From positions 186,001-250,000 of the IMG/VR virus record IMGVR_UViG_3300042010_000106: DNA of 64,000 nt; one strand, 5' to 3'. Below the pieces are notes generated by a model. It saw only the letters and a program-made list of their open reading frames with translations, searched no databases and was not told the DNA's origin. The position numbers and the translations under genes are program-made. Of the stretch, positions 24,659-63,398 are shown in pieces (the stretch's first letter is position 1; each line of letters opens with the position of its first letter).

Positions 24659-25407
24659 CAGCGACGACTGCCAGTAACTCCCACAGTGTTGACGGGAACT
24701 GTTTTATCCGTTGCGCGGATGCGAGCATGCTGTAGCTCTTGGTTCATGCGCAGGTGTTCACGGGCCGCTTCGCCAACATCATGCTTGTGCATAGCGTCCA
24801 TGGTTTTTTCTGCAAGAAGTTTAGACATTCTTTTCAGGTAAGCATGCTTGTACGTTTCTGGCATTTTCGTTTGATTAACGAGCGCCGCAATTGCGTCCAA
24901 GCGAGAGATAGGAACGAACGCGCTAAGCAGCGCGCCGTCCAATTCGATACCAACTTCCAACCCATCGCGTAATCCAGCCTTGACGTATTCTTGTGCATCG
25001 TCAAAAGCAAGCAGGTTGGCAGCAGTCCTGTAGAAGTGGTCTTTGTAGACCGGCAGCACGTTACCAACAGAGTCATTAAAAGCGACCAATTCGGAATCGG
25101 GCACTTCGACTTCATTCATGGCAAGTGGGTGATTTGAATCTAGGTAATTGATTCCGCTTTCTTGTGGGAAAGTTTTCGGTTCGGGAGGAATCACCATGCT
25201 TATCGTGTCCTGCATAAGCATTGGCGGTAAGCACGGGTCGAACTCGAAAACGCCGTCCTTCAACGGCTCGTAATCAATTGTGAAAACAGTATGATGCGAC
25301 GGGCGATTGTCCCTTGCCGCATCAATTTCTATATTCCCTGTCATGCGCTGAAGCTGAATATCACGATCCAGCTTTGCGTCTTCAAGCGAGCGCGGGAGGC
25401 CCATCAT
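24658..25407 (-). CDS. hypothetical protein immediately upstream of terL (small terminase candidate by position only)
   Basis: C-terminal part of the 336-aa ORF; its first ~87 codons lie inside the DnaB tail in another frame, so start placed near 25407 (uncertain). Confidence 0.5.
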   Translation of the reverse strand: MMGLPRSLEDAKLDRDIQLQRMTGNIEIDAARDNRPSHHTVFTIDYEPLKDGVFEFDPCLPPMLMQDTISMVIPPEPKTFPQESGINYLDSNHPLAMNEVEVPDSELVAFNDSVGNVLPVYKDHFYRTAANLLAFDDAQEYVKAGLRDGLEVGIELDGALLSAFVPISRLDAIAALVNQTKMPETYKHAYLKRMSKLLAEKTMDAMHKHDVGEAAREHLRMNQELQHARIRATDKTVPVNTVGVTGSRR

Positions 25408-26884
25408 CAGAACGGAGAAGTTTGGATTTTTTCTTTTTCTTGCCTTTGTCTTTGCTGGATTTTTTAGTTCCAGTGTCGTCTGGTTTGGACTTTTTGGACT
25501 TAGACTTTTTACCGTCTTTGTCTTTGTCTTTACTGGACTTCTTGGACTTCCTCGTTGGGGTTTCGGTGTCTTCATCGTCTTCGAATTCAAGGTTTCCTCC
25601 GCCCGATGTTGACGCTGCATCGCCCATGTTGAACGCAGACATAATGTCGAAACGTTCAGCCAGTTCAAAGCGCATCAATTCACCGTCACGATCTTTAGAC
25701 ACTTCCATCGGAATAATCCGAAGCTCGCGCTGTTCAGGTTTGGCATAGTTCCACTGCCACAGAACGTCGGCGTGTTCCTTCATACCTTTGGAGTAACGCA
25801 GTTTTTCTTTTTCGTCGTCGAGCTGTGCAAGCAGAATAACGAGTGTGCCAGTTTCACGCGTGTAGTTTTTCGCCACACGTGCCGCGTCCATCAACGATTT
25901 CCATTGATCAGAACCGCTGTCCTCTTCCAACAGACCCACGTAGTCGATCACGATAACTTTGTAACCGAACGGTTTAGCCAAACGCAAGCAGTCGTCCATC
26001 GAAAGGTTGCCCTTTGGACTATGCGTCGTATAGTTAATTCCGTGTTTTTTACCGTGGGCATCCATGTTTGCTTTCGCTGCACGGATTTTACGTTTGTCGT
26101 CAGCAGTAAGTTTTGCTTGCGAGAAACGTTTAAGAGGAATCCCGGTTAAGTGGGACATGAGGCGCTGTGTCTCTTGAATTTCCTGCATTTCCAAAGTGAT
26201 TCGGAATGTACTCAGGTTATTCACTAGATACATGTGACGGCAGATGTTCATGGCGATAGTGGATTTACCGCCGGACGTTGTACCAGCCAGAATGATAACC
26301 CCCATTGTAGGGAAGCCACCATTCGTCGTGTCGTAGTCTGTATACCCCGTAGAGATACGAGGCATTGTTTCATTTCGACAAATTGCTTCAACAATATCGT
26401 CGTTGTTGCTTTGCGCACCGAAGTGCAAAAAGAAATCTTCGTCCGCACGTGTTGTGTTTGCGCGGGCAACTGCCGTGGACAAATCCATCAGCAGTGCTTC
26501 GGTATCTACTTGTGTGGCATTGAGCTTTTCAATCGTACCCATGCACGCTTCGTGCATGATGCGAATCTTTCGGAATTCCTCAAGCGTTTCGAGTGTTTCG
26601 TCACGGTGGGCTTTCTTCAAGCACGGTTTTTCACGTGCTTGAGCTAAGATGTCGCGTATGTCTTCGTTCAGCCGTGGATCTTCAAGCAGGCTTTTGAAGC
26701 TTACGATCTTGAAACGTTTTTTCGCCAGCGTGTCGATACGCTCGAAAGCCATTCGACACGGTGGAGAATAAAACAGTTCTTTACTCAGTTTGCCGAGCCA
26801 CAGTGTTCGCTTTTCTTCGGAGATTTTTTCGGACGTGATTGTTAGTAACGCACGAAGCTCCGCAGTTTGACTGTGTATCTGCAT
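25382..26884 (-). CDS. dnaB: DnaB-like replicative helicase with K-rich C-terminal tail
   Basis: Walker A ILAGTTSGGKST, TLEM, Walker B VIVIDYVGLL, LAQL, HAD, KDRDG. Confidence 0.9.
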   Translation of the reverse strand: MQIHSQTAELRALLTITSEKISEEKRTLWLGKLSKELFYSPPCRMAFERIDTLAKKRFKIVSFKSLLEDPRLNEDIRDILAQAREKPCLKKAHRDETLETLEEFRKIRIMHEACMGTIEKLNATQVDTEALLMDLSTAVARANTTRADEDFFLHFGAQSNNDDIVEAICRNETMPRISTGYTDYDTTNGGFPTMGVIILAGTTSGGKSTIAMNICRHMYLVNNLSTFRITLEMQEIQETQRLMSHLTGIPLKRFSQAKLTADDKRKIRAAKANMDAHGKKHGINYTTHSPKGNLSMDDCLRLAKPFGYKVIVIDYVGLLEEDSGSDQWKSLMDAARVAKNYTRETGTLVILLAQLDDEKEKLRYSKGMKEHADVLWQWNYAKPEQRELRIIPMEVSKDRDGELMRFELAERFDIMSAFNMGDAASTSGGGNLEFEDDEDTETPTRKSKKSSKDKDKDGKKSKSKKSKPDDTGTKKSSKDKGKKKKKSKLLRSDDGPPALA

Positions 26885-26895
26885 TTACACACCTT

Positions 26896-31605: not shown

Positions 31606-32121
31606 TCACAGAAGTTCCCCGGTGCCGACGAACGGCATAGGCGGGGTCGCGGTGGGGCGGGCGGTCGCCGGGTCGGTAGGGTGGTAGCGGTCGCGTCGGT
31701 GGTCGTAGCCTATGAGCGCGTACAGGTCGAACACGCCGCCAGCCTCGACCGTGGGCACGTCGTCAAGCTCAGACGGTGCGCCTGCATCGCGCATGCCTGC
31801 CCATACGGCGTTATCGACTTGCCACTGGCGGGAGTCGCGCACGTCGTACCACACTGCAAGGCTGGTGTATACCATGCGTGCGTTGGGGTCAGTAGCGAGG
31901 CGAGCGTTAAACGTTTTGATGTCTTTGTCGTAATGTTTTGAAAGACGCAATGTGCAACGACGACGAAAACCATTCAGGCTTTTCAATTCTGCGTACGCGC
32001 CTTTTTCTTTGCGGTCTTTTAAAACGGTGTGGAGAATGCGCACGGGTTTATTTCCGTGGTACTCGATGATCCAGTATTGCCGCGCCATTTCTGGACTGTT
32101 ATCGAATTCTATTTTTGCCAC
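31606..32121 (-). CDS. hypothetical protein, tandem paralog family member 1
   Basis: YWIIEYHG ... FDLYALIGYD motifs shared with next two genes. Confidence 0.65.
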   Translation of the reverse strand: MAKIEFDNSPEMARQYWIIEYHGNKPVRILHTVLKDRKEKGAYAELKSLNGFRRRCTLRLSKHYDKDIKTFNARLATDPNARMVYTSLAVWYDVRDSRQWQVDNAVWAGMRDAGAPSELDDVPTVEAGGVFDLYALIGYDHRRDRYHPTDPATARPTATPPMPFVGTGELL

Positions 32122-33413: not shown

Positions 33414-33433
33414 TCGGCACCCTATCTTTACAC

Positions 33434-34468: not shown

Positions 34469-35968
34469 TTACTCTTCGTCTGCCGAATCGTCGTCGCCTT
34501 TGGACTTCGCTTTCGCAGCTTTTTTGGTGTGGCTGTTTTTGATTTCGTCGAGATAAAGATCGTAACCTTTACCGCTGGCGATTTGCTTGCGGCACCATTC
34601 GTAAATACGAACAGGCTTCGGCAGTTTCATGGATTGGCAGCCTTTCTTAATCAGCTCTGCATCACCATCAACCATCGCTTTGAATTCAAACCACGACAGA
34701 ACTTTACCAGCGAACGGCGTACCTTCACCGAACTTGATTTTGTTCCGTTGTCCGCTGACTTGTCCGGTTTCTTTCAGGTATGTGTAGCAATCCCACACCC
34801 GGTCGAAACCCAAACCTTCCCCGTTGGCATTCGCAACGTACAGACGCAAAGTCATGTTCGCTTTTTGCGGGCCACCGAGTTTGTTTTTGAAAGCGTGACA
34901 GCGAATATAACGGTACGTGTCGATACCTTCACCGGTCAACGAATCCTCTTCTTCCATCATCCCTTTTCCGTGAGGAATTGAGATTGGAGTCATACGGAAA
35001 CGCGCATCAGCAAAGAAGCGCAACGCAGTACCGCACGGCTCTTTCTTATCAGGGCCGTACATCGCCATTGGAACTTCACGCAATTGGTTAATACCGAAAA
35101 CCAGAACGCGTTTTTCTTTCATGCGGCCTTTAACACGTTTGATGCCATCGGCAAACATACGCGCTTGAGACGCCAGACCATCCGAACCGTCGTCCTTATC
35201 GTCTGCGCGGCGGGAAAGCATCGCAGGATAGGAGTCAACAAGGAAAATCGCTTGCGGCAAACCGTGTGGCGCAGGGACTTTGAACTTGTTGAAACGCTTG
35301 AAGTATTTGGCGCAGTATTGGCCCTTCAGCATTTTCTGGTTGGATTTGGTGTTCGCATAAATGAAGTAGTAATCGCCGTCGATCAGCAGAACAGACGGGA
35401 GAATTTTCAACACTTTTGCGAGTGAGTCGAAGAAGTCTTCACCTACAGCCGGTGCGTAGTAACGAATACGCGGCTTGACGATGTAGTTACCTTCTTTGTC
35501 CTGCACACCAAATACTTCGGACGCAGAAGAATTCTTCCCGAGTCCGTTGTACGTCCACATTTGGTTTGCGTATTCCGCCGAGAACGAACCTTCGTAGTCG
35601 AAGAAAAACGCCATACCTTTAAATTCGACCATACGAATGATCGAACCCATAACGGTTGTTGCAAGCGTGGTTTTACACGATTGTTCTTCACCGTAAAACG
35701 TGTACCAGCCACCGGCCACCAGACCGCCAGCCATCATCAGGTTCAGGCACAACAGGCCCGTATCCAAACGATCTTCTTTTTCGTTAACCGACATGGAAGT
35801 AAGGCCGACCGCCTTTTCCATATTGTCGATTTCTACGTCCAAGTGCGCATACGGGTTAAAGCCGCTAACCTCCGCGCTTTTCTTGGTTGCTAATTCTTTC
35901 TTTGCCTGAGCTGGCGTCAACTTGGGCGCCAAATTCAGCTTCTTCGACTTTACAACTTCTTTAGCCAT
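34469..35968 (-). CDS. recA: RecA/UvsX-like recombinase
   Basis: GEEQSCKTT (Walker A variant), FLVDSYPAM, LASQARMF, INQLRE, GTALRFFAD. Confidence 0.9.
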   Translation of the reverse strand: MAKEVVKSKKLNLAPKLTPAQAKKELATKKSAEVSGFNPYAHLDVEIDNMEKAVGLTSMSVNEKEDRLDTGLLCLNLMMAGGLVAGGWYTFYGEEQSCKTTLATTVMGSIIRMVEFKGMAFFFDYEGSFSAEYANQMWTYNGLGKNSSASEVFGVQDKEGNYIVKPRIRYYAPAVGEDFFDSLAKVLKILPSVLLIDGDYYFIYANTKSNQKMLKGQYCAKYFKRFNKFKVPAPHGLPQAIFLVDSYPAMLSRRADDKDDGSDGLASQARMFADGIKRVKGRMKEKRVLVFGINQLREVPMAMYGPDKKEPCGTALRFFADARFRMTPISIPHGKGMMEEEDSLTGEGIDTYRYIRCHAFKNKLGGPQKANMTLRLYVANANGEGLGFDRVWDCYTYLKETGQVSGQRNKIKFGEGTPFAGKVLSWFEFKAMVDGDAELIKKGCQSMKLPKPVRIYEWCRKQIASGKGYDLYLDEIKNSHTKKAAKAKSKGDDDSADEE

Positions 35969-36021: not shown

Positions 36022-37191
36022 TTACTTCTTTTTCTTTTTCTTCGCAGGTGCTTCGTCTTTCGACGATTTCTTTTTCTTCGAAGACTTTTCTTCTACCGCT
36101 GCCTTTTTCTTTTTCTTCGGCTTTGGTTCGTCGTCATCGTCATCGTCGATCTTGGTTTTCTTTTTCTTCTTCGGTTTGATGTCGTCTTCGTCGTCGTCAT
36201 CGTCTACCGATTTCTTTTTCTTTTTCTTGGCTTTTGGTTCGTCGTCTTCGTCGTCTTCATCGGCGAAAGGCTTTTTACCGCTGCCTTTTTTGCTTTTCTT
36301 CGACTTTGGTTCGTCGTCATCATCGTCATCGTCGAGGCTGCGTTTCTTTTTGCCTTTCGATTTCGGTTCGTCGTCTTCGTCATCGTCGTCATCGTCAGCA
36401 AGATCGGCGCCGACAACTTTCATACGCTTAACGTCTTCGTTCGCTTGCTCTTCAGTCATACGACCGGTTGCGTCGAGCAGTTTTTCGGTCAGTTCCCAAA
36501 CCAAATACGCGCGTTCTTCTTTGGTCAACGGAACAGCGCCGTCGTCCACTTTGTCGATGCTGTATTTGTCAGTACCCGGTGCATCTTTCTTGTATTTCAC
36601 TTTCACGTCGAAACCGTAATCGGCGTCGGTCGCGTCGTACTGTTCTTTCTTGCCGGTCTTTTTGTTTTTGCGCTTGTTGTCTTCCGACAATTCGTTCATA
36701 CGCATGATCATGGTCATGGTAAAACGAGCAACGCCTACCGGTGTCCAAGTTTCAGAATTGATATCCTTGAAACCGGTCTTCGCTTCTTCCTTGGTAGGCT
36801 TCGGCGATTTGCGCGGTGCGCCTTCTTCTTGCTTGTCACGGTCGATTGCGTTGAACAACCAGAAATCGCCGGAACGTGCAGGAGAGGTTTTGCGGTCTGC
36901 TGTGATCAGCGCTTTGAACGGGCAACGAACGCCTTTCTTCGGTTTGTCCGGGTTGGCCGGGTCGAAAGAAATGTCGTAACGAGGAATCTGGATTTCCTTG
37001 TTTTCGGCGCCGGTGTAAATGTTGATCCAGATTTGACGAACCTGCAACGGGGCAAGTGGCAGCAGACGAATCGGCTTCCATTTCTTGTCCACGTATTTGA
37101 TCATTTCAACGACTTCTTCCATACGGACAGAATCGTTGCGGGAATTGGTCTTGATAGAACCAAAACCCTTAAACGACGATAGACCACTCAT
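36022..37191 (-). CDS. ssb: gp32-like single-stranded DNA-binding protein with long D/K block tail
   Basis: IRLLP start, YGFDVKVKYKK..KYS in core; position next to recA; ~115-aa tail of alternating poly-D/E and poly-K. Confidence 0.65.
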   Translation of the reverse strand: MSGLSSFKGFGSIKTNSRNDSVRMEEVVEMIKYVDKKWKPIRLLPLAPLQVRQIWINIYTGAENKEIQIPRYDISFDPANPDKPKKGVRCPFKALITADRKTSPARSGDFWLFNAIDRDKQEEGAPRKSPKPTKEEAKTGFKDINSETWTPVGVARFTMTMIMRMNELSEDNKRKNKKTGKKEQYDATDADYGFDVKVKYKKDAPGTDKYSIDKVDDGAVPLTKEERAYLVWELTEKLLDATGRMTEEQANEDVKRMKVVGADLADDDDDDEDDEPKSKGKKKRSLDDDDDDDEPKSKKSKKGSGKKPFADEDDEDDEPKAKKKKKKSVDDDDDEDDIKPKKKKKTKIDDDDDDEPKPKKKKKAAVEEKSSKKKKSSKDEAPAKKKKKK

Positions 37192-37312
37192 GCACTTACC
37201 TCAATATAGTTTGTTTTCAACACTCGAAAGGCGTGACCATTCGGAATGTCATTTACAGTTTTCGCGACGAATTCCACGCCAGCTTTAACCAGCAAAACAA
37301 GGCATGGAAAAT

Positions 37313-41842: not shown

Positions 41843-42114
41843 GCGATCAGGTACGGTTCCAGCGTGGCGATATTTTCAGTGACGTAGGCCACCGATTGCC
41901 CAACACATTGCGGCAACGACAGACGATACGCAGTGACCACCAGCAGCACGCATTTACGTACTTTGGTTTCGTCGAGGTCGGCACCGTTCAGATGCGCGCT
42001 GTACGCGTCAGTCTGTTCAATCACGCGTGTAAGCGCAGCGACTTTCTGCGTTTGTTTGTTGCGTTGGAATTCTGCCAAATCTTTTTCGATGCGTAGAAGC
42101 AATTCGGTTTTCAT
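41839..42114 (-). CDS. hypothetical protein
   Basis: 91-aa ORF, ATGA overlap. Confidence 0.6.
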   Translation of the reverse strand: MKTELLLRIEKDLAEFQRNKQTQKVAALTRVIEQTDAYSAHLNGADLDETKVRKCVLLVVTAYRLSLPQCVGQSVAYVTENIATLEPYLIA

Positions 42115-42788
42115 AGGTTGTTATCCATTGCGATTTTCGCGAGTGCTACCAAGTGCTTGCAAAGGCCGACAGCAAGGCCGGGGTTTTTAAACACTGGTGG
42201 TTCACCGTTGCAGTACAGCATGTATGCCGCACCGAAATAGGCGTTCGCATATTCGTAGGTGTAGACGTACGATTCGCACGTGCATTGCACCAAAACTTTA
42301 CGATGCCTGTTGACAGGTTTTGTCTGGTCTGGATCGAGGCCGATGATATACGTTTCGTGGTAACGTTTTACTTTCAGCGGGCGCCACGGATCGTTTGTAA
42401 CCATGATGCCGCGAATAACAGGTTTGCCGGTTTTTGTTGCACCGATCTTGTACCTGTGTGCGTCAACGTCTACAGCATTGGCAAGGAAATACGAAGGTGT
42501 GTTTCGAATCAACTGCCGTAGCGTCTGGCCTTTGCGTGTGAACATTGTTTCAGGCAGCAGGCGCGGCCCAAGGCTTTCGAATTTACGCAGACGATACGGA
42601 ACACCACGGACGGTTACGATGCGAGCGCTGCGCGGGGTATGGGCTTTGCCTTTGCGCTTGCGTTCTTTCACTTTCTCCGCGTCACGTGTTGCAGCCGTTT
42701 TCTTCGGCTTTGTTTCGATTCGTTTTTTCTTAACGCTCTGCGTTTTAATTCTTGGCTTGTCCGGCGAGTGTGTTCGAACTTTACCCAC
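42111..42788 (-). CDS. SWIM-like zinc-finger protein with basic N-terminal extension
   Basis: VQCTCESY ... GLCKHLVAL. Confidence 0.7.
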   Translation of the reverse strand: MGKVRTHSPDKPRIKTQSVKKKRIETKPKKTAATRDAEKVKERKRKGKAHTPRSARIVTVRGVPYRLRKFESLGPRLLPETMFTRKGQTLRQLIRNTPSYFLANAVDVDAHRYKIGATKTGKPVIRGIMVTNDPWRPLKVKRYHETYIIGLDPDQTKPVNRHRKVLVQCTCESYVYTYEYANAYFGAAYMLYCNGEPPVFKNPGLAVGLCKHLVALAKIAMDNNL

Positions 42789-45153: not shown

Positions 45154-45696
45154 TTATTCGTCGTCGTCTTCGTCTTCGTCGTCTTCTTCTTCTTCTTCGT
45201 CGTCTTCTTCTTCTTCGTCGTCTTCTTCTTCGTCTTCGTCGTCGTCGTCTTCTTCGTCTTCGTCGTCTTCTTCGTCGTCTTCTTCGTCTTCGTCGTCTTC
45301 GTCTTCGTCGTCTTCTTCTTCTTCTTCGTCGTCTTCTTCTTCTTCGTCGTCTTCTTCTTCGTCTTCGTCGTCGTCGTCTTCTTCTTCGTCGTCTTCTTCG
45401 TCGTCTTCTTCTTCTTCGTCGTCTTCTTCGTCGTCTTCTTCTTCTTCTTCGTCGTCTTCGTCGTCGTCGGACTCTTCAGCCTCTTCACGTTCCGAATCTA
45501 CGGAGTCGATGAATTCCAGAACGTCGTCGATGGTTTCCAGATCGTTGTCGGCCAGCGTAACCATGACCTGACGCAGAATGTCGAAGTTCAGCAGGTTCAG
45601 TGCATCGAGGCTCACTTGTGGTTTGGCTTTGCCTTTACCTTTTGCAGCGGCTTTCTTTGCAGGGGCTTTCTTTGCAGCAGCTTTCTTACCAGCCAT
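45154..45696 (-). CDS. protein with basic N-terminus and 104-residue poly-D/E tail
   Basis: MAGKKAAAKKAPAKK; short helical core; residues 77-180 only D/E; GGAG RBS. Confidence 0.8.
   Translation of the reverse strand: MAGKKAAAKKAPAKKAAAKGKGKAKPQVSLDALNLLNFDILRQVMVTLADNDLETIDDVLEFIDSVDSEREEAEESDDDEDDEEEEEDDEEDDEEEEDDEEDDEEEDDDDEDEEEDDEEEEDDEEEEEDDEDEDDEDEEDDEEDDEDEEDDDDEDEEEDDEEEEDDEEEEEDDEDEDDDE
45157..45468 (-). repeat. 312-nt (GAA/GAC)n codon tract with internal direct repeat
   Basis: Only two codons used; DDDDEDEEEDDEEEEDDEEEEEDDEDEDD occurs twice. Confidence 0.9.
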
Positions 45697-45877: not shown

Positions 45878-46453
45878 TTACTTCTTTTTTGCTTTTTTGC
45901 CACCGTCTTTGATGTCGGTAACTTTAGCTTTTTTCTTGCCTTCTTTTTCAGAAGAAGCTTTTGCACCGCGTCCGGATTGTTGCGAACCTTCCAGATCCAG
46001 CGCTTTGATTTCGTAAGAAACCTTGTCGTTGCTGGTGTACTTTACAGTTTCGCCATTGCCAGTTACGACGATGGTGTCACCTTCGAACTTCAGCACGCCG
46101 GTTGCTTCGGTGAACTTGCGACGTTGCAGAACGGTAATGCTACCGATTTCGTCAACCTTGCCGAGCTGTTCCAGAACATCGCTGTTGGCGAAAACGGAAA
46201 CGGCCATTTTCTTCGAAGCAGAAGAAACTTTGTGACGGAAAACGGTGTGCGTATCGGAACGCAGAACCAGATAGCCCGGAATTTCAACCGGCATGGTGGA
46301 GAAACCGGTTACGGTGAACAGGCCGCTCTTCATGCTGAATGGAGTTTTTGCGCTGGTGCCAGTCAGTTTGCGTTCCAGTTTGGTGGTACGCGAAACTTTA
46401 GTACGTGCAACGCCCGGTTTTGCGCCTTTGGTTTTGCTTTCAGTCTTAGCCAT
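45878..46453 (-). CDS. beta-rich hypothetical protein with K-rich termini
   Basis: 191 aa; AGGA RBS. Confidence 0.7.
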   Translation of the reverse strand: MAKTESKTKGAKPGVARTKVSRTTKLERKLTGTSAKTPFSMKSGLFTVTGFSTMPVEIPGYLVLRSDTHTVFRHKVSSASKKMAVSVFANSDVLEQLGKVDEIGSITVLQRRKFTEATGVLKFEGDTIVVTGNGETVKYTSNDKVSYEIKALDLEGSQQSGRGAKASSEKEGKKKAKVTDIKDGGKKAKKK

Positions 46454-49386: not shown

Positions 49387-50739
49387 TTACAAGTTGTTGA
49401 GGTGGTCAATGACGGTTTGCATGCTGCCAGTTTCCAGCTCTACTTCACCGTTGTTTTCCAGACGGTACTTGTCGATTTCTTTTACGTTCGCAAACATTTC
49501 GCGACGGATAGTCAGACGCAGGTTGTAATCAACGTCACGCATGCCGACGCCGTTATCGTTGGGAACAACGCGAGACATAAGAATGACCAGCGCGCCATCG
49601 GTGATTTCCGAGGCTGTATCGTTCGGCAACTTCGCCGCAATTTCTTGCAGGATTTGCGCGAAACGTTCGGCGTGTTCATCAGCTTCACTTACCGCTGCTT
49701 CTGCAATCGCCGCATCAGGTGCACGTTCGCCGCCCATTGGTGCAACGCGGGCAGGTTCTTCGGTCACAACGGTTTCAACCGGTGTTTCGATTTCAACGGT
49801 TGGCGCCGCTACTTCGTCTTCAGTTGGGAACGCGTCCGGCTCTTCTTCTGCAAAGAAAGTGTCGGGTTCGTCTTCACTGAAAATTTGTTCAACTTCAGTT
49901 TTGGCCGGTGGCGCTTTGAATTCTTCGTACAATTCCAGAACGCGGTTAACAACCGACATCGGGAAATCACTCACGTCGTTGAATTCGACAAACGAATCGA
50001 ATTGTTCAACACCGGTTTCCAGCTTAACGCGAATGAACGCGACGGCTTCTTCGTCCTTACGCAGAACGTCGAGGTTTTCGAGCTGTTCAACGGTCAGCAT
50101 ATCTTCGTTGAACGGTTCGTCTTGAACAACGTCGCCGGTTGCATTCAAACCGGTATCTTCAGCTTCGAAGGTTTCCGGTTCTTCGTCGTCTTCTTCGACT
50201 TCAGGCGCCAGTTCGACAGGGCCGGTCGCATGGAAGCCTTGAGGGCCACCATTAGCAGGTGCTACAGGCTCGCTAGGGGCGATTGGTTGTTCAACCGGGG
50301 CCGGTGCATTGTCGGCGTTCGGAACGAGCGACAGCGGATGCACAGAAGCCGTGCGGCGTGGCTCTTCGTCTTCCACGGTGAACAGGGTTTCGATTGCCGA
50401 CATCGCCACGTCTTCAGACGCCAGATAAACGACGATCAAACCGGAATCTTCGTCATGCGCCACGTTTACGAAAATGCCGACGTACTGTTGCGTAATGTCA
50501 GCGGCAGCGCTGTAGGCGAATTCCAATTGTTCGGCGAACGAAATCAATTCGAACGTCGGCAATTCCAAACGGTACAGGTAAACCGTTTCGTCGGTGGTCA
50601 GATCCAGCAGCACTGGATCGAAACCCAACCATTGCAGAAGGTGTTCTGCTTTGGTGTCGAGGGCCTTTTGCATTTCGCTGAAAAAGAAAGCCTGCGCTTG
50701 GTTGTAAGTGCTGGCTTTCAAAGTCTCAATGTATTTCAT
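49387..50739 (-). CDS. acidic multidomain hypothetical protein
   Basis: 450 aa; E/D/P-rich linkers with EPETF/EPDTF/EPDAF motifs. Confidence 0.75.
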   Translation of the reverse strand: MKYIETLKASTYNQAQAFFFSEMQKALDTKAEHLLQWLGFDPVLLDLTTDETVYLYRLELPTFELISFAEQLEFAYSAAADITQQYVGIFVNVAHDEDSGLIVVYLASEDVAMSAIETLFTVEDEEPRRTASVHPLSLVPNADNAPAPVEQPIAPSEPVAPANGGPQGFHATGPVELAPEVEEDDEEPETFEAEDTGLNATGDVVQDEPFNEDMLTVEQLENLDVLRKDEEAVAFIRVKLETGVEQFDSFVEFNDVSDFPMSVVNRVLELYEEFKAPPAKTEVEQIFSEDEPDTFFAEEEPDAFPTEDEVAAPTVEIETPVETVVTEEPARVAPMGGERAPDAAIAEAAVSEADEHAERFAQILQEIAAKLPNDTASEITDGALVILMSRVVPNDNGVGMRDVDYNLRLTIRREMFANVKEIDKYRLENNGEVELETGSMQTVIDHLNNL

Positions 50740-50802: not shown

Positions 50803-52644
50803 TTACTCGCCTTCTTGCACAGCAGCCAGAAGGGATTCCAGATTCACGCCAGCTTTTGCAACTGGTTTATCCATACCGACCAGCAGAGGCGAACCGTCTT
50901 TGTTCAGGCCGACCAGAATGTATTGCTTGTCTTCCATTGCAACGGTGTGGCCCGGTTCGATTTCGTAACCGATGATATCGAACACGTCTTGAGTTGCGTA
51001 CCACAGCTTAACGTAAGCGGTGATGTTGCGACCCGGCATCAGTTTTTCCAGACGGGCTTTTGCGTTTTCAACGAGTTCGGTAACGTCGAGCGGGAAAGTG
51101 GTTTCGGCTTCTTCTTCCTCTTCGAAAGATTCAGGCTCTTCCTCTTCTTCGTCTTCGTCGTCGAAGGTTTCCGGCTCTTCTTCTTCGTCGTCTTCGTCTT
51201 CTTCGTCGAAGGTTTCCGGCTCTTCTTCTTCGTCGCCTACTTCCGGCTCTTCCTCTTCTTCGTCTTCTTCCTGTTCCAGCAATTCATGCGATTCGAAATC
51301 CGCAGGCTTGCCAGTCGGCGCAACGTGACCTTGCGATTCTTGCAGTTTCGCAAAACCGTTTTCCAGCTCTTTTACTTTGCGTGCGATGTCGGCTTTGTTG
51401 GCGTCGGTCGCGGCGAAAGCGAAAGTAACGGTCATCATGTTGCTACCGTTCTGAGTTGCAGTCGCCGAAACCAGATCAATGTTATAGGCTTCTTGCAGAC
51501 CCATCAGAACGCATTCACGCAGGTGGTCTTTTACGTCCAGAGTGGTGTCGTAATCGAACGCGTCAACGTCCAGCTTTTTAACGGTTTGCGACGGCGCGGT
51601 ACGGTTGCGAGGAACAGCGGTGCCAGTGCGCGGCAAATCTTTACCGGTGTAAACGAAACCGGAACCGTCACGGGCGATTTCTTCAACGCTGCATTTGAAA
51701 CCGCGATCAGTTTCAACGGTGTTGTTTTTGAAAGTTTTGGTAACGGTGTGAGTTACCTTGCCGACTTTCAGCGCTTGGTTTTTCACTTCGTTACGGGACA
51801 CGGCAGCCGGTTTTTTCGCAGCAGCAGCTTTTGCGAGTGCAGCGGCGTGCAATTCTTCCAGCTCTTCGGCGTATTCGTCGGAGATTACAGCGAAGCCACC
51901 ACCGACCAGACTTTTGCGAACGTCTTCGATTTGGAATTCTTCACCGCTTTCAGTTACGCAGCGACCGGATTTGTAAGTGGTTTCAACGGTGAAATCTTCG
52001 CCGTCGATTGCAACGACTTTGCCGCGAATGTCTTTCGTGGTCAGCAGGCCGGGAGCGCTGAACAGGGTATCAACAGCATTTGCAGCGGTCGAAGCTTTTG
52101 CAGCCTTGGCAGGTTTTGCGGTCACGCCGCCTTTGGCAACAGCGCCACCTTTTGTAGCAGCAGCTTTTACAGCGCTTGCAGGAACGGCGGTTTTGTTGTC
52201 GGTGGTAACGAAGCCTTTGCCTTTACGAACGACGTTCGCCAGTTCGATACGTTGACCATCGGCCAGCACGACAATGCCTTTCGAACGGATTTGTTTTTCA
52301 ACGGCAACGCCGTTTACTTTTTTGCCGTCGAGTTCGTCAGCGGTAACAGCGGCGGCAGGTGCACGGCCAGCAGGAGCTTTTGCAGCAGGAGCAGCGGCAG
52401 CGGTTGCCTTCTTGCTGTTCTCGGCAGGAGCTTTTGCAGTTGCGCCTTTACCTGCAACGTCGATGAACAGACCTTTGCCGCGATTGTACAGATCAGCAGC
52501 CGGATATTCAGCGCCCGATTCGGTGCGGATGATCCCTTTGCTGGTCAGGTGTTTCACAATCACTTCTTGCACCTTGGTTTCTTTCGGGGTGCCTTTGCGG
52601 GAAATGATGTTCAGAGTACGGCCAGCGTGGTTAACAGTAGACAT
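50803..52644 (-). CDS. multidomain protein: four repeated beta modules, A/K-rich linkers, acidic tract
   Basis: Repeats KGIIRTESG..Y, KGIVVLADG..I, GRCVTESG..F, NTVETDRG each followed by G.GF; AGGAG RBS; strong codon bias suggests high expression. Confidence 0.8.
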   Translation of the reverse strand: MSTVNHAGRTLNIISRKGTPKETKVQEVIVKHLTSKGIIRTESGAEYPAADLYNRGKGLFIDVAGKGATAKAPAENSKKATAAAAPAAKAPAGRAPAAAVTADELDGKKVNGVAVEKQIRSKGIVVLADGQRIELANVVRKGKGFVTTDNKTAVPASAVKAAATKGGAVAKGGVTAKPAKAAKASTAANAVDTLFSAPGLLTTKDIRGKVVAIDGEDFTVETTYKSGRCVTESGEEFQIEDVRKSLVGGGFAVISDEYAEELEELHAAALAKAAAAKKPAAVSRNEVKNQALKVGKVTHTVTKTFKNNTVETDRGFKCSVEEIARDGSGFVYTGKDLPRTGTAVPRNRTAPSQTVKKLDVDAFDYDTTLDVKDHLRECVLMGLQEAYNIDLVSATATQNGSNMMTVTFAFAATDANKADIARKVKELENGFAKLQESQGHVAPTGKPADFESHELLEQEEDEEEEEPEVGDEEEEPETFDEEDEDDEEEEPETFDDEDEEEEEPESFEEEEEAETTFPLDVTELVENAKARLEKLMPGRNITAYVKLWYATQDVFDIIGYEIEPGHTVAMEDKQYILVGLNKDGSPLLVGMDKPVAKAGVNLESLLAAVQEGE

Positions 52645-53840: not shown

Positions 53841-54443
53841 TTAGGCTTTTTTAGCTTTCGGAGCTTTGGCAACCGGGGCAGCAGCAGGAGCGGCTTTCGG
53901 TGCTTTGGCTTTAGCGCCACCTTTCACAGCAGGTGCAGGAGCGGCAACAGCAGCAGCTTTCGGAGCTTTTGCTTTCGGTGCTTTGGCAACTGGTGCAGTT
54001 ACGGCAGCGGCTTTAGCAGCCTTCAGTTTTGGAGCGCCGGTTTTGGTAACGCCGACAGCAACAGGAGCAGCGGCAACTTTCGGAGCTTTGGCTGGCTTGG
54101 CAGCTTTTGCTTTTTCAGCGGCTTTTGCTTCTTTGGCTTTCAGAGCAGCAGCGGCGCGTTCTTCGCCTTGCAGTTTCTTCAGAGCGGCTTTGTCGTCGGC
54201 GATTTCAGCGGTCAGAACGGTGACGGCATTGGACAGGGTTTCAACGGCGGTTGCCGATGCTTTCTGAACGTTGGCGACAACTTTCGGAGCGGTAGCCAGA
54301 ACCAGTTTCGAATGCGCTTTCACGTGAGCGTTGGCAGCAGTCAGTTGTGCTTTCACGGTGGCGAGGGTAGCCACTTTGCCAGCGATGGTTTTGGTCAGAG
54401 CGGATTCGGCTTTGGACAGCTTTGGAGTGGTAACGGTGGTCAT
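53841..54443 (-). CDS. histone H1-like (AlgP-type architecture) K/A/P-rich protein
   Basis: N-terminal coiled coil then KAPKA/KAAKPAKAPK repeats. Confidence 0.75.
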   Translation of the reverse strand: MTTVTTPKLSKAESALTKTIAGKVATLATVKAQLTAANAHVKAHSKLVLATAPKVVANVQKASATAVETLSNAVTVLTAEIADDKAALKKLQGEERAAAALKAKEAKAAEKAKAAKPAKAPKVAAAPVAVGVTKTGAPKLKAAKAAAVTAPVAKAPKAKAPKAAAVAAPAPAVKGGAKAKAPKAAPAAAPVAKAPKAKKA

Positions 54444-59084: not shown

Positions 59085-60713
59085 TTAAATTTCCAGACCA
59101 GAGTGTGCCTTGTCAGGGTTTTTCATGTACGTTTTCATCCGCGCTTCAGTATCACGCGCCGCACGTTCACCCGGATTCTTGGCGTCCGCTTTCAGGATCT
59201 TGATTTCGTCTTTGAATGCTTTGATTTTTTCCTTCAGAGCATCCGCGTCCATCTTCGACAGTTGGCGGATTTTCCGATCAAGAATAATCTTGGCATCTTC
59301 CAGCGGAATCTTGAAATGCTTCGCCAGTTTCGCATCAGGATCTTTTGCCATCAGGATAGACGGCAGGATCTTGAGCAATTCTTTCAGGTTCAAAATACCG
59401 AACAGATAAACTTCGTTGAGGTGCAGAAGTTTTTCGTTTTGATCCAGCTTGTATGCGATCATCCGCTCTTCAAGTTGAATGCGGTATTGAACCCAACCGG
59501 TGAAGAAATCCACGTAGTTCAGATAGCGGAATTCGTTCTGGATTGTGCCCAATCGGCGGATGGTGATACCCAACCGATAATTGACAGAAGAGCGCACGAT
59601 GTTATCGACCTTGTGGCAGATTTCATCAAAACGATCTTCGTCCATATTCTTCGGACAATCGACGGTGCACAGCGCACCGAATGGGCCAGCGTGTTTAACC
59701 TGCTTGCCCGGTGTGTTTTCTGCGTTCTTCACGCCGTCGATATTCAGGATCTTGTTCAGCGTTTTATCAATGCTTTCAACAGACGCCAAAGTCATCGGCA
59801 CGTGCGATTGCAAATAGATTGTGCGCTTCGGAATATCCGTGTGCGTTAAGGGCGCATACGTCACGTTTCCTTTACCGGTTGTCATCAGGGTTTCGATATC
59901 AGAATCTTTCGAAACGTCGATGCAGCCGTATGGGTGTTTGATTTCCAGCGTGTCAGAAAGTTTTTTGCCGGTGTAGGTTTTACCCTTCAGCATGTCGATA
60001 ACGACTTTCGCAACAGACTTCAGCGAGAACGCAGGGTTGCCCGCTTTCACGCCGTAGGCCGGTGCTGGAATGTTCGTGATGAACAGCAGCGATGGCAGCA
60101 GCGCAGGAAGGTACAGCGGAATTTTCTGATCGTTCGAAAAGTTCATGTCATACGGCACGACTTTCAGATAATCAGGATCGAGCAAAAACGTGTTCGTGAA
60201 ACGAGACATTTTCGCTTCGGTGTAACGCTGTGCAGATGCTGGCGTGCTTGGCGAACCGTAACCACCTTGACCGTCAACGAATGGCGGCAAAGCGTTTGTG
60301 ATTGTCACCATGGCATCGTACGCGGCTTGGTCGCCGTGTGGGTGATACATACCAATGGTGTCGCCGATTGTACGTGCGGATTTTTTATAGCCTTTGTCTG
60401 GACGCAAACCCAAACCAGCCATAGACCAGAGAACCGCACGGTGTACAGGTTTCAAACCGTCGCGGTAATCTGGAACGGCCCGCTGTTCAACCACATACGA
60501 ACCGTAAGTTTTCAAAGCGCCTTCAGTGAAGAATGAAAGCGTCTGGTCAATCGTTTCGCCAGTGGCAACAGGGAACTTGGAAACCATCGCCCATTCTTTT
60601 GCGGTGACGACTTCCTTGGATTTCTTCGGTGCTTTTGTCAGGTCTTTGTTTTTCTTGACCGCAACTTCTTTCGATTTCGATTTCTTTTCAGATTTTTTCG
60701 GTTTGAGAGCCAT
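59085..60713 (-). CDS. gyrA: type IIA topoisomerase A subunit (GyrA/ParC/gp52-like, no C-terminal pinwheel)
   Basis: DGLKPVHR, YHPHGD, ASAQRYTE (catalytic Tyr), LP.LL; K-rich N-terminal extension. Confidence 0.9.
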   Translation of the reverse strand: MALKPKKSEKKSKSKEVAVKKNKDLTKAPKKSKEVVTAKEWAMVSKFPVATGETIDQTLSFFTEGALKTYGSYVVEQRAVPDYRDGLKPVHRAVLWSMAGLGLRPDKGYKKSARTIGDTIGMYHPHGDQAAYDAMVTITNALPPFVDGQGGYGSPSTPASAQRYTEAKMSRFTNTFLLDPDYLKVVPYDMNFSNDQKIPLYLPALLPSLLFITNIPAPAYGVKAGNPAFSLKSVAKVVIDMLKGKTYTGKKLSDTLEIKHPYGCIDVSKDSDIETLMTTGKGNVTYAPLTHTDIPKRTIYLQSHVPMTLASVESIDKTLNKILNIDGVKNAENTPGKQVKHAGPFGALCTVDCPKNMDEDRFDEICHKVDNIVRSSVNYRLGITIRRLGTIQNEFRYLNYVDFFTGWVQYRIQLEERMIAYKLDQNEKLLHLNEVYLFGILNLKELLKILPSILMAKDPDAKLAKHFKIPLEDAKIILDRKIRQLSKMDADALKEKIKAFKDEIKILKADAKNPGERAARDTEARMKTYMKNPDKAHSGLEI

Positions 60714-62773
60714 CAGTCATCCAACCCCAGCAGGCGGCGGCGGTGCACGGCATCTTCTGCCACAACACCAAAGAAGAAATTGCGCTGTTCAACGTTCGCA
60801 AAAGGATTGATTCGAATCAGGCGGCGTTGCTTAGGATCGAAGGCGATTGGGCCAACTTCTTTTTCGCTAACTTCACCCCAACCTTTGATACGAATGATTT
60901 CCTGATCCTTTACAGCTTTCGGCGCGTTGGCACGGCATTCATCGAAATTGTCACCGCCGTAAACGATCCCTTTATGCAGTGCAGCAAACAGCGGAGCCTG
61001 TACGCACCACACGCGGCCTTCTTTGAAAAGGTCAGGCATGAGACGAACCAGCGCAGCCAAATACAGAACAGCAATGTGCCCGCCATCCGGGTCAGGGTCA
61101 ACAAGGAAAATCACGTTTGCTACGCGAAGTTTTTCAGTGCTGAGTGTTGGGTTTTCTGCTTTCGGATCGAGCGTTTTGATATCGGCGCCCAAACAAATCA
61201 GCATGTTCATGATTTCTTTGTGTGCCAAGATTTTCGCGAGTGTTGCGCTCAGTGCGTTGAGTGGCTTACCGCCAGCGGCCAACACTTCCTGATAATAACC
61301 ATTGCGAGCGTTTACGCTTGGGCCTTTTGCAGAGTCACCTTCCACGATGAACAATTCACGTTCGTGTGGTTTGCATTTCGATGCAGCAGCCAGCGCAGCA
61401 GGCAGAGCGTTACCCTTGCCTTTCTTTTTCACGTCGGCCATGGATTTCACAACAGCCGCCAATTCAACGCGGGTTTTTGTCATGAATTGCGCACGCTTGA
61501 TAATCATCTTGGCGACTTTCGGATTCGCGTCGAAGTATTTATCAAGTTCAGGCTGAATCAGGTCGGTGACTTCTTTGTCAACGCGTGACGAAAGTTTGTC
61601 TTTTACCTGAGACGAATATGCAGCGCCGTGCATACGCCAGTCAAACACACCAGTCAAACCCATGAGCAAATCGGAACCGGTGAAGCCTTGGCCTTTTGCA
61701 CCCTTTTTATCGGGCATGTGTTTTTTGATAACGGTGCTGAGTGCTTGCGTGAAACCTGTTACGTGCCAGCCGCCATCGGCAGTCGGCGAAGTGTTCACGA
61801 AAGTCAGGAAGTTTGCAGCGTCCGTGTGGTCAGACCAAACCAGTGCGCAAGTGATGTTGTCATTCTTGAAAGTGAATGGCTTACCCTGTGCTTCCAGTTC
61901 GCGTTCTTCACACATGAATTTCGGCACGTATGCCAAATCTTTCTTGTTGATGAACGTGTGGTCATGACGTTTCTTGTCACGGATTGTGGAGAAACGAATT
62001 TCCAGACCCGGATTCATCAGCGCCATGTTTTGCAACCATTGTTGCACGCTGTCTGCACTCGGTTCTGCTTTGCGGAAACCTTTTGGCAGAGCCTTGCCGC
62101 GTTTCGAATCCTCAGACACAACGGTCTGGTCGAGTTTCATCGCGACAATCGTACCGTATTTTTGCGTCTTGTCTTTCAGCAGTGTCAGCACGTCTTTATC
62201 AACGGCTTTTACTTTAACTGGATGCGGGCCTTTGGAAGTGATTTCACCCTTACCATATGACTGGAAATGCAGACCGCCTTTGTATGTTGTCCAAGCGCGT
62301 AACTCTTCGGACACAGCCACAACAGCAGACATACCAATGCCGTGCGTGCCAGCCGACGTTTTATACGCCTTGTCATTGAATTTTGCGCCTGCGTGAGTGC
62401 GGGTATACGCCGCTGTCATGATCGAAATCTTTTCGCCAGACTTCAGCGTTTTCATTTCGAGCGGAATACCACCAGCGCAGTCAGCCACAATGAAAATGTC
62501 GGTGTCGTAGTTCAGAATCACTTCGATGATTTTGTTACGACCGGCAATGTGTTCATCGTATGCGTTATCTACAGCCTCTTTCACACAGCGATAAGCCATG
62601 AATGGGCCGAGGTCGCCGAGATACATTGACGGGTTTAAACGCAGACCGTCCAAGCCTTCCGCAATTTGGAATCCGTCTTGCGTTGCGCTGTCTTTCTTGT
62701 TGGCCTTTTTAACACCCTCGGCAATCTTTGTTTTCTTCGTTGCCTTTTCGACCGGGGCCGATTTCTTAGCCAT
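60713..62773 (-). CDS. gyrB: type IIA topoisomerase B subunit (GyrB/ParE-like)
   Basis: EAVDNAYDE, DCAGGIP, HAGAKF, GTHGIG, IVEGDSA, DPDPDGGHI, KGWGE. Confidence 0.9.
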   Translation of the reverse strand: MAKKSAPVEKATKKTKIAEGVKKANKKDSATQDGFQIAEGLDGLRLNPSMYLGDLGPFMAYRCVKEAVDNAYDEHIAGRNKIIEVILNYDTDIFIVADCAGGIPLEMKTLKSGEKISIMTAAYTRTHAGAKFNDKAYKTSAGTHGIGMSAVVAVSEELRAWTTYKGGLHFQSYGKGEITSKGPHPVKVKAVDKDVLTLLKDKTQKYGTIVAMKLDQTVVSEDSKRGKALPKGFRKAEPSADSVQQWLQNMALMNPGLEIRFSTIRDKKRHDHTFINKKDLAYVPKFMCEERELEAQGKPFTFKNDNITCALVWSDHTDAANFLTFVNTSPTADGGWHVTGFTQALSTVIKKHMPDKKGAKGQGFTGSDLLMGLTGVFDWRMHGAAYSSQVKDKLSSRVDKEVTDLIQPELDKYFDANPKVAKMIIKRAQFMTKTRVELAAVVKSMADVKKKGKGNALPAALAAASKCKPHERELFIVEGDSAKGPSVNARNGYYQEVLAAGGKPLNALSATLAKILAHKEIMNMLICLGADIKTLDPKAENPTLSTEKLRVANVIFLVDPDPDGGHIAVLYLAALVRLMPDLFKEGRVWCVQAPLFAALHKGIVYGGDNFDECRANAPKAVKDQEIIRIKGWGEVSEKEVGPIAFDPKQRRLIRINPFANVEQRNFFFGVVAEDAVHRRRLLGLDD

Positions 62774-62970
62774 CAGTAAAATTCCTCTTCTGCAATGCGA
62801 CTGCGCAGAATGTCGTAGTAGACGTGCATGGCCTCAAGCTGTTTCAGGATTCGCCGTTGTCCACCGCTATGAATGGTTTTGTATTCGGGGCCGTCGAATA
62901 CTGCTTGCAAACGTTTCATTTCTTTTTCGAGGTTTGCTTTTTCAGCAAGCATCAATTCTTGTGTGGTCAT
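62773..62970 (-). CDS. small helical phage protein (crAss001_48-like pattern)
   Basis: E...L......L..F....L.KQLEAM..Y..IL.SRI. Confidence 0.5.
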   Translation of the reverse strand: MTTQELMLAEKANLEKEMKRLQAVFDGPEYKTIHSGGQRRILKQLEAMHVYYDILRSRIAEEEFY

Positions 62971-63398
62971 TGCTTGGTCGCCTTTGGTTTGCGTGCACGG
63001 GGCTTGCTCGGTTTCTTTGCAGCCATACCGCCGACATCCAAAGACGCGGCCACTTCAGCCTTCGCTGCTGCTTTTACTTTGGGAGACTTGCGTTTCTTTT
63101 TGACCTTAACCGCAGGCATTTCGCTTTCGAGTTGGGTCAAACCAATCTTGAACATTTCCGAATGGTTAGCACCTGCGTCCGAAGCCACACGGATAATTCC
63201 GCTTTCTGTTTTCTCAATGATCAGGAACGTTCCCGATTGCGGATGTTTGACGACCGTTGTGTATGTGGTGCCGTCTTTGTGTGTATTGCTGCGATGAAAA
63301 GTATCATCGTGGCGGGTGTGTGGGTGTGAATAGAAGCTGCCAACAATGGCGTGCATCACTTCGCGAGTGTTCAACTTGCCAATCAATTGCGTAAGCAT
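62967..63398 (-). CDS. hypothetical protein with K-rich C-terminal tail
   Basis: 143 aa; AGGAGG RBS. Confidence 0.65.
   Translation of the reverse strand: MLTQLIGKLNTREVMHAIVGSFYSHPHTRHDDTFHRSNTHKDGTTYTTVVKHPQSGTFLIIEKTESGIIRVASDAGANHSEMFKIGLTQLESEMPAVKVKKKRKSPKVKAAAKAEVAASLDVGGMAAKKPSKPRARKPKATKQ

Follow-up and report, generated by a model that had tools for sequence, protein, structure and literature searches.

We analysed a 64,000-nucleotide stretch of viral DNA (positions 186,001 to 250,000 of the IMG/VR record IMGVR_UViG_3300042010_000106; hereafter the window), which is part of a 312-kb phage genome and is the replication and recombination module of a jumbo phage of the Lu11/HRDY3/PaBG type. 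Polycationic, lysine-rich tails are found on at least seven proteins of the window; both their composition and their position are conserved, they occur preferentially on DNA-acting proteins, and they often bear conserved short end motifs. The single-stranded DNA-binding protein (SSB) encoded in the same module has a tail whose charges are far more segregated than expected by chance, and this holds family-wide. These features may represent an SSB-centred electrostatic tethering system, in which polycationic tails hold enzymes on DNA and on the acidic blocks of the SSB tail, a reading that we favour tentatively and put somewhat below an even chance.

Lysine-rich (K-rich) extensions on replication enzymes had been listed in an original prediction, made by a model from the DNA letters, and all the peptides quoted there are located in minus-strand open reading frames (ORFs), the strand on which every gene of the window is encoded; no sign of an artefact was seen in the tails. 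The DnaB-type replicative helicase (25382..26884; Pfam DnaB_C at residues 177-408) has a 68-residue C-terminal tail (residues 433-500, nt 25385-25588), which includes KSKKSSKDKDKDGKKSKSKK, has a kappa (charge patterning) of 0.37 (z +4.8), and reads as an acidic patch (GGGNLEFEDDED) followed by a K-rich spacer and a conserved terminal motif (LLRSDDGPPALA). The RecA/UvsX-type recombinase (34469..35968; Pfam RecA) possesses a K-rich N-terminal tail (residues 1-36, nt 35861-35968) and a C-terminus (residues 478-499, nt 34472-34537) that is basic and then acidic. Two adjoining genes encode the A subunit (59085..60713; 542 aa, Pfam DNA_topoisoIV at residues 78-513) and the B subunit (60713..62773; GHKL ATPase and Toprim, Pfam DNA_gyraseB, Toprim, and HATPase_c) of a type II topoisomerase. 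The K-rich N-terminal tail of the A subunit (residues 1-45, nt 60579-60713) starts with MALKPKKSEKKSKSKE, that of the B subunit (residues 1-30, nt 62684-62773) starts with MAKKSAPVEKATKKTK, and both stand ahead of the Pfam domains, just as the DnaB tail lies outside its domain boundaries. These proteins had been called GyrA- and GyrB-like, and a two-subunit type II enzyme with K-rich tails was indeed found; however, it is of the phage topoisomerase II/IV type and not a gyrase, because the A subunit lacks the GyrA C-terminal domain, an assignment consistent with a previous study (PMC7824862).

The SWIM zinc-finger protein (42111..42788; PHROG 18980) was recognised by its CxC...CxH motif at residue 169 and has a K/R-rich N-terminal tail (residues 1-60, nt 42609-42788) containing the peptide KKKRIETKPKK, both as had been predicted. 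K-rich segments are present at both termini of a protein of unknown fold (45878..46453; net charge +18), for which orthologs were found by tblastn in HRDY3, Lu11, and PaBG only, and a K/R-rich C-terminal tail (residues 96-143, nt 62970-63113) is present in a small protein (62967..63398) with no ortholog among the sequences of the relatives compared. An MmcB-like nuclease (12375..12944; PF06319 at residues 51-142), whose basic N-terminus had also been pointed out, has an R/K/P-rich N-terminus (residues 1-25, nt 12870-12944) and shows the same phenomenon outside the 25382-63398 range on which the original prediction was centred. The lysine fraction of the enzyme tails is 0.23-0.35 and their net charge per residue (NCPR) is +0.13 to +0.34. 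When a K-dense segment was defined as a 20-aa stretch with at least seven lysines, such segments were found in 12 window proteins versus 6.4 +/- 1.5 after within-protein shuffling, and nine out of 13 touch a terminus. Within the window alone, their enrichment in the replication half (10/49 proteins versus 2/30) was not significant (p = 0.12).

Absence of the tails from related phages had been named beforehand as evidence against a functional system; the comparison showed that they are clearly conserved. The DnaB C-terminal tail, both RecA termini, and the SSB tail are all kept in 12 relatives with 61-82% protein identity. In Lu11, HRDY3, and two IMG/VR relatives (L015 and L016), tails are also kept on the SWIM protein, both topoisomerase II subunits, and the 45878 family, together with the poly-D/E protein and both H1-like proteins described below. 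The whole set of tails and charged proteins is present in PaBG (about 50% identity), including the tails of the SWIM protein, which is also tailed in AD1, and of the topoisomerase II A subunit; the B-subunit tail is shorter in PaBG. At 37-40% identity, NCTB and Dickeya AD1 keep the SSB tail plus the DnaB or RecA tails, those of AD1 including the one on DnaB, and at 28-37% identity, phiRSL1, BcepSauron, PhiXhv-16, RHph_I42, and Afa-NA1 keep a blocky SSB tail and a K-rich RecA N-terminus, the composition of the latter being conserved in all relatives compared. Judged from the alignments, the tails are conserved in composition and position, not in sequence. For DnaB, the core is 65-74% identical and the K-rich spacer 31-40% identical with insertions and deletions, and the last 12 residues, with the pattern ...DDGPxAL[SA], rise again to 50-92%; therefore, selection acts on the composition and on the tip, and not on the sequence of the spacer.

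A census was made in the fully annotated genome of PaBG, where a basic terminus was defined as a 20-residue window with at least eight K+R within 60 residues of the terminus. With functional classes taken from the depositors' annotations and a threshold of our own choice, 13/35 DNA-acting proteins have basic termini versus 2/64 structural, lysis, or metabolic proteins (Fisher p = 1.5e-5). The carriers are DnaB, RecA, SSB, topoisomerase II A, Pol A, a ParB-like nuclease, Vsr/MutH, HNH endonucleases, RuvC, SbcC, and DprA. Because the clamp, clamp loader, primase, ligase, and sigma factor of PaBG are tail-less, whereas nucleases, the ParB-like protein, and HNH/Vsr proteins are tailed, the tails follow DNA contact and not replisome membership. 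Their placement shifts between lineages, and the clamp loader of AD1 has K-rich tails at both ends.

The SSB gene (ORF 36022-37191) adjoins the RecA gene and encodes a core (residues 1-262; 36406..37191) followed by a 127-aa C-terminal tail (residues 263-389; 36025..36405), in which five D/E blocks alternate with K blocks. PHROG 15004 labels the protein an SSB; no match was found for it in Pfam, including the gp32 (PF08804) and SSB (PF00436) families, nor for the core sequence in profile searches of PDB, and the Pfam gp32 family was weakly matched by five of 99 family members. An exhaustive profile search gave 508 clusters, from which 99 diverse cores were used for AlphaFold2 (AF2) modelling, and the resulting core model has a pLDDT of 93.6 and a pTM of 0.87; a model from nine close sequences (pLDDT 46) was discarded. 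When searched against PDB with Foldseek, the model matched RB69 gp32 (2a1k_A, E 2.8e-6) and T4 gp32 (1gpc, E 4.1e-5) with a probability of 1.00 and TM of 0.46-0.56, and the next matches were unrelated (E above 0.1). The original prediction of an SSB with D/K blocks was thus right about the SSB and its blocks and wrong in the type that it implied, for the fold is that of gp32, not that of a bacterial SSB. Columns corresponding to the zinc ligands of gp32 are occupied by H in 79/99, C in 80/99, C in 83/99, and C in 73/99 family members; the window protein has I54, D73, C90, and K93 at these positions, three of the four ligands being lost. The zinc site is ancestral to the family and lost in the clade of the window, leaving an SSB of the gp32 fold that is predicted to be zinc-less.

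The tail of the window SSB has a fraction of charged residues of 0.72, an NCPR of -0.01, a net charge of -1, and a kappa of 0.59, which is z +13.1 above shuffled sequences. All 47 close homologs are blocky as well (z at least 6.8, median tail 141 aa), and about half of them end in an acidic-aromatic tip, such as SWDD. Among 150 diverse representatives, 136 have a tail of at least 30 aa, 112 have one that is highly charged and blocky, and 52 have acidic-aromatic tips, including literal DDDIPF, DDDDIPW, and DEDMPF. The window protein ends in ...PAKKKKKK (K6) directly before TAA, without such a tip, and ten near-identical metagenomic homologs also end without it. An assembly or frameshift artefact was rejected as the cause, as a clean TAA is followed by GC-rich, hairpin-like sequence, and no acidic-aromatic tip (no WDD) was found in any frame after the gene. 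Members of the family are thus built from a gp32 core, a linker of charge blocks, and a tip of the SSB type, with K6 in place of the tip in the sub-clade of the window.

Long charged proteins are encoded in the same region. The poly-D/E protein (45154..45696; net charge -107) consists of a K/A-rich N-terminus (residues 1-29), a short helical segment, and a run of D and E that had been counted as 104 residues, and exactly 104 uninterrupted D/E were found (residues 77-180, nt 45157-45468). The codons of the tract are GAA (58) and GAC (48), and the orthologs in HRDY3, Lu11, L015, L016, and PaBG have tracts of 90-118 D/E, that of HRDY3 being pure E. The length in the window rests on one assembly, because independent short-read metagenome assemblies, with flanks at least 99% identical, all break in the repeat (45151-45476). 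For the N-terminal domain, tblastn gave no match, and the atlas search gave weak leads only (scores of 0.66 or less, stored-model pLDDT 0.41). The phage was found repeatedly in soil and rhizosphere metagenomes of several studies, and the public runs containing it are DNA metagenomes, apart from one labelled as RNA. In 5.8 kb of sequence, that run gave two short contigs, one over the 5' part of the poly-D/E gene (45502-45672) and one over the 5' part of the 45878 gene and its upstream region (46277-46536), which is at most a faint hint of high expression and too little to infer expression from.

Next to the poly-D/E gene lies the gene of a K/A/E-rich protein (44459..45040; net charge +27, PHROG 36478), which has a predicted helical N-terminus, a 130-aa repeat region (net charge +26), and the tip AYNFD; the tips of its orthologs are YDDFE, DYDFED, FDDFE, and DDFEDFDDLD. 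The 44459, 45154, and 45878 genes are adjacent in every genome that has them, and this trio was detected only in Lu11, HRDY3, PaBG, and close IMG/VR relatives; in AD1 and phiRSL1, no long D/E protein was found in the 25 kb next to SSB. An H1-like protein (53841..54443), with a helical N-terminal half and an A/K/P-repeat C-terminal half (net charge +22 over residues 100-200), has orthologs in HRDY3, Lu11, L015, L016, and PaBG (PaBG_00136). As to the two proteins that had been called histone-like, the resemblance to H1 in composition stands, but no histone-family match was found in Pfam or PHROG.

Two large acidic proteins complete the set. The first (49387..50739; net charge -72) has three [DE][DE]P[DE][TSA]F motifs and no match in Pfam or PHROG, and its orthologs are acidic too (-79 to -88), carrying DDFE motifs instead; the Lu11 ortholog is annotated as "putative polyphosphate kinase", and nothing that we found supports this annotation. 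The second is a multidomain protein (50803..52644; net charge -40) with repeated small beta-rich modules between A/K/P linkers and an E-rich segment (residues 447-518) containing EEPETF twice and EEPESF once. The forms of the motif in the two proteins are EEPETF, DEPDTF, EEPDAF, and EEPESF, with DDFE or DDFD in the orthologs. EEPETF was therefore rejected as a conserved short linear motif, since its acidic-aromatic character is kept and the exact motif is not. Acidic-aromatic motifs recur in the tips of the 44459 family (YNFD, YDDFE, FDDFE), in the SSB tips, and in both large acidic proteins.

The sequence AACTGTAAA is the core of the annotated middle/late promoter of Lu11, CTGTAAATA....GTA, and occurs in 18 copies in the window, all on the coding strand, versus 0.49 expected. 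Half of them (9/18) lie within 45.7-49.1 kb, in a 3.4-kb cluster (45780-49074) upstream of the charged trio, and several are intragenic. Putative promoter cores, all on the minus strand, were located upstream of SSB (37252..37260), in tandem upstream of the poly-D/E gene (45780-45788 and 45838-45846), where Lu11 has two annotated promoters in the same place, just upstream of the 45878 gene (46472-46480), and upstream of the 62967 gene (63428-63436); a further site is found at 37892. By this motif match the sites are candidates for active promoters. The full 16-nt promoter motif of Lu11 was discarded as a search pattern, as it has only five matches in the window, mostly intragenic, and the shorter AACTGTAAA is the conserved part.

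Taken with this anatomy, three precedents, namely docking on the acidic A-domain of gp32, the linker and tip of Escherichia coli SSB (EcSSB), and the lysine repeats of actinobacterial TopA, lead us to the tethering reading. K-rich tails would bind polyanions non-specifically, and the first such polyanion would be DNA, where the tails would make the enzymes locally more concentrated and more processive, in the manner of the lysine repeats of TopA. The second would be the repeated D/E blocks of the SSB tail, which stand at the position of the acidic A-domain of gp32. On SSB-coated single-stranded DNA (ssDNA), complementary blocks of adjacent tails might pair, giving cooperativity and many acidic docking sites, so that helicase, recombinase, topoisomerase II, Pol A, and nucleases could be held at forks and recombination intermediates through many weak charge contacts, with the conserved tips adding specificity. 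Since the poly-D/E protein is restricted to one clade and the tails and the SSB polyampholyte are far wider, the general acidic partner, if there is one, would be the SSB tail. In the Lu11/PaBG clade, the apparently strongly promoted trio, made up of a K-rich protein, the poly-D/E protein (-107) with its K-rich anchor, and a second K-rich protein, would supply extra polyelectrolyte; its probable role is that of a chromatin-like coat together with an acidic protein that chaperones the coat or competes with it. Such a network could give rise to a visible condensate and would not require one.

Several points weigh against this proposal. The tail-to-SSB contact is something that we purely infer from sequence. 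DNA-binding proteins are basic in general, so the contrast seen in the PaBG census is inflated, and that contrast also depends on functional classes that we drew from the depositors' annotations and on our own threshold. The window SSB, its tip lost and its tail net neutral, is less suited to the role of an acidic hub than the SSBs of phiRSL1 or BcepSauron, whose tails are strongly acidic. Moreover, tail placement varies by lineage, the clamp loader being tailed in AD1 and tail-less in PaBG, which points to a generic function that can be replaced, not to a fixed set of interactions.

The same shifting placement suits a simpler account, in which each tail is an independent DNA tether that raises affinity or processivity, no electrostatic network joins the proteins, and the poly-D/E protein is unrelated; the latter could then mimic DNA and sequester defence proteins or DNA-binding proteins of the host, or it could be a chaperone of the H1-like proteins encoded next to it, its gene being flanked by two K-rich protein genes in every genome that has it. 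TopA provides a direct precedent for such tethers (PMC5714199), the tails track DNA-acting function and not replisome membership, and a tail might compensate for the DNA-binding C-terminal domain that topoisomerase II A lacks. Independent tethers would explain the tails of the enzymes. What they leave unexplained is the regular alternation of acid and base in the SSB linker across hundreds of clusters, where gp32 is simply acidic and EcSSB simply flexible, as well as the acidic-aromatic tips recurring on SSB, the 44459 family, and the acidic proteins. We regard this account as rather unlikely. The original prediction went further in the other direction and proposed that the K-rich tails tag the replisome as clients of a membraneless coacervate, a shell-less factory with the poly-D/E protein, other acidic proteins, and DNA as its scaffold. 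The ingredients are present: the components are oppositely charged and multivalent (five acid blocks in the SSB tail, a tract of 104 D/E, at least seven tailed proteins), tandem promoter cores precede the poly-D/E gene, the module is conserved as far as PaBG, and the SSB tail is a blocky polyampholyte. Polyampholytes of high kappa are known from polymer physics to favour self-coacervation. E. coli SSB itself phase-separates via its linker and enriches its partners (10.1101/797431, PMC12143593). However, the poly-D/E protein and its neighbours occur only in the Lu11/HRDY3/PaBG clade while the tails are much more widespread, and in PaBG the clamp, clamp loader, primase, and ligase go untagged while nucleases and HNH/Vsr proteins are tailed, so that the specific form with a poly-D/E scaffold and a fully tagged replisome is not supported. 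It also has to contend with a bacterial cytoplasm rich in competing polyanions (RNA, DNA, polyphosphate), which leaves specificity unexplained, and with lysine-repeat tails being known as plain DNA tethers (PMC5714199); we consider it unlikely. A broader version would cover a widespread jumbo lineage without a phage nucleus (Lu11, PaBG, phiRSL1, and BcepSauron types; 508 SSB clusters), with replication and recombination taking place in an SSB-nucleated polyelectrolyte condensate on ssDNA, admission by lysine tails, a block-copolymer linker, and tuning by poly-D/E and H1-like proteins in one clade. If true, such a condensate would parallel the chimallin phage nucleus, with a charge code in place of a shell, and we judge this improbable to a similar degree.

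Two further readings would deny the tails a role in replication. According to one, they are functionless low-complexity expansions that arose by replication slippage at tolerant termini on an A-rich coding strand. Spacer sequences and lengths do vary with insertions and deletions, slippage is suggested by a D/E tract made almost entirely of GAA and GAC in the window and of E alone in HRDY3, and there is a strong AT skew at 44-48 kb. Yet the tails hold their position, range of lengths, and sign of charge across lineages from 28% to 82% identity, the PaBG census shows them concentrated on DNA-acting proteins, the conserved tips lie distal to the spacers, which must therefore stay in frame, and the SSB block pattern stands at z = +13. 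Poly-A slippage as the source of the K tracts is disfavoured in particular, because the lysine codons of the tails are mixed (AAA 135, AAG 85), more so than elsewhere (AAA 968, AAG 421). Neutral expansion is thus very improbable. The other assigns the basic proteins to the virion, co-packaged with DNA as counter-ions, with poly-D/E as an internal scaffold or placeholder. T4 is known to package basic internal proteins, and the promoters belong to a class annotated as middle/late in Lu11. Nevertheless, helicase, recombinase, and topoisomerase II are implausible cargo, no protein with a charged tail has the N-terminal signature M-x-[IV]-x-[LMI]-[ASC] of the structural-half genes described below, and virion proteomics of PaBG, of low coverage, reported 14 proteins with none of these mentioned, all of which makes a virion role highly unlikely.

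The components of the proposed tethering system are of known kinds, namely a gp32-type SSB, a hub of SSB linker and tip, and lysine-repeat tethers. What is new is their combination throughout a lineage and the block-copolymer linker; the tails of the Lu11 group, the poly-D/E protein, and the SSB linker were described in no open-access paper that we found. In T4, the acidic C-domain of gp32 binds UvsX, UvsY, gp59, and Dda (PMC3016280). Like T4 and RB69 gp32, the phage SSB has the same predicted core fold, a charged, disordered region after the core, and a gene adjoining that of the recombinase, and most members of its family keep the His and three Cys zinc ligands. It differs in its sequence (12-13% identity), its lack of a Pfam match, and the loss of the zinc site in the clade of the window, and the acidic A-domain of about 50 aa is replaced by 77-200 aa of alternating acid/base polyampholyte, which is net neutral in the window. 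EcSSB condenses through its linker and recruits partners through its tip (10.1101/797431, PMC12143593), and many members of the phage family share this order of core, long disordered linker, and acidic-aromatic tip; unlike the bacterial protein, however, they have a core of the gp32 type and not PF00436 and a linker that is charged and blocky, not Gly/Pro/Gln-rich, and the window protein ends in K6 where a DDDIPF-like tip would stand. Lysine repeats of actinobacterial TopA stabilise the complex of enzyme and DNA and give processivity (PMC5714199). The phage tails likewise are disordered K-rich extensions of DNA enzymes outside the catalytic domains. Whereas the TopA tails are on single proteins of a cellular lineage, here a set of phage enzymes is tailed (helicase, recombinase, topoisomerase II A/B, nucleases, and Pol A in PaBG); the tails can be N- or C-terminal, acidic patches and conserved tips are frequent in them, and acidic partner proteins occur alongside.

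Polyelectrolyte pairs are known from eukaryotes, such as histone H1 with prothymosin-alpha, and nucleophosmin, whose acidic tracts bind clients with basic motifs. The phage region resembles them in placing a gene with a very long D/E tract beside H1-like, K/A/P-rich genes and in the multivalency of its basic and acidic parts; there is no homology, the setting is the bacterial cytoplasm, and any pairing of the phage proteins would be putative. A strategy of concentrating replication enzymes around phage DNA would also recall the chimallin nucleus of phiKZ-like jumbo phages (Chimalliviridae). That system differs in its protein shell with selective import, its PhuZ tubulin, and its multisubunit RNA polymerases, whereas a sigma factor is encoded in the window. 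Chimallin, PhuZ, and multisubunit RNA polymerases were not recognised among the window proteins scanned, which were not all of them, and no genome-wide search was made. Previous studies showed that the Lu11 group is a jumbo lineage distinct from Chimalliviridae (PMC7824862, PMC7412058).

If the tethering reading is true, a virus would assemble and concentrate its replisome by charge patterning, not by specific folded interfaces or a protein shell, and the concept of the SSB as a hub, established with the A-domain of gp32 and with the linker and tip of EcSSB, would be extended to the polyelectrolyte regime. If the tails are tethers only, they would represent a lineage-wide, convergent use of lysine-repeat tails, hitherto documented mainly in Actinobacteria. 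Among its hundreds of clusters, the family contains natural linker variants that range from net acidic to net neutral and have kept or lost the tip, and these could be used to probe how charge blockiness affects the cooperativity of the SSB, its recruitment of partners, and condensation. The system is open to experiment, since cultured isolates exist in Lu11, whose host is P. putida, HRDY3, and PaBG. For annotation, the "hypothetical protein" beside RecA in these phages can be named as an SSB of predicted gp32 fold.

The gene order of the window is the same as in HRDY3, Lu11, and PaBG: portal, terminase, DnaB, RecA, SSB, and sigma factor, then a long stretch of unknowns, a 5'-3' exonuclease, topoisomerase II A, and topoisomerase II B. 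At the DNA level, the RecA gene is 74-76% identical to those of the jumbo Pseudomonas phages Lu11 and HRDY3. Lu11, HRDY3, and PaBG have been placed in the "Lupandier" group (PMC7412058), and phages of this type, together with phiRSL1, in subgroup 2.2 of Iyer et al. (PMC7824862). No transfer RNA (tRNA) gene was found in the window or in the sequenced parts of relatives that were examined. PaBG has five (KF147891, 120228-122843), for Thr, Ala, Lys(ttt) twice, and Asp(gtc), and all but the one for Thr decode the residues that dominate the charged low-complexity tails (K, D, and A). For 32928-34429, counterparts were absent or only weak in the sequences of relatives examined. Three small, consecutive minus-strand genes (31606-32121, 32109-32537, and 32547-32918) are paralog-like, with similar N-termini (...YWIIEYHG, HFVIIEHCSG, RYYVIEYRG), and in relatives the products of 31606-32121 and 32109-32537 share their matching ORFs.

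In the structural half of the window (164-21346, minus strand), at least 11 genes start with M-x-[IV]-x-[LMI]-[ASC]-x-[ASPT], as in MQIQLAVAAA, MEIQLAVAAS, and MKIQLALATA, where about 0.05 would be expected by chance. The genes with this signature start at 472, 969, 4011, 7038, 7545, 7817, 8851, 9628, 11301, 11752, and 21346, with near variants at 3762 and 6643, and the signature is probably a shared capsid-targeting or prohead-protease signal of internal virion proteins. A 557-aa protein (9628-11301, minus strand) has a core of the eukaryotic-type topoisomerase IB/tyrosine recombinase (PF01028, E 1.3e-12) and is the phage-specific topoisomerase I that has been noted for Lu11, PaBG, and phiRSL1 (PMC7824862). 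Because of its N-terminal MQISLAAA signature, this topoisomerase IB may be packaged in the virion.

The KMPT-N domain is common to two products of the minus strand, a SprT-like metallopeptidase (12947-14287; PF10263 and PF20294) and a KTSC protein (20050-20817; PF13619 and PF20294). Finally, the large terminase (21362-24658, minus strand) has 1098 aa compared with about 970 aa in relatives, and its alignment with them breaks after residue 522. A Pfam intein splicing domain was identified at about residues 520-660 (PF14890, E 1.2e-21), and the terminase gene is therefore interrupted by an intein.

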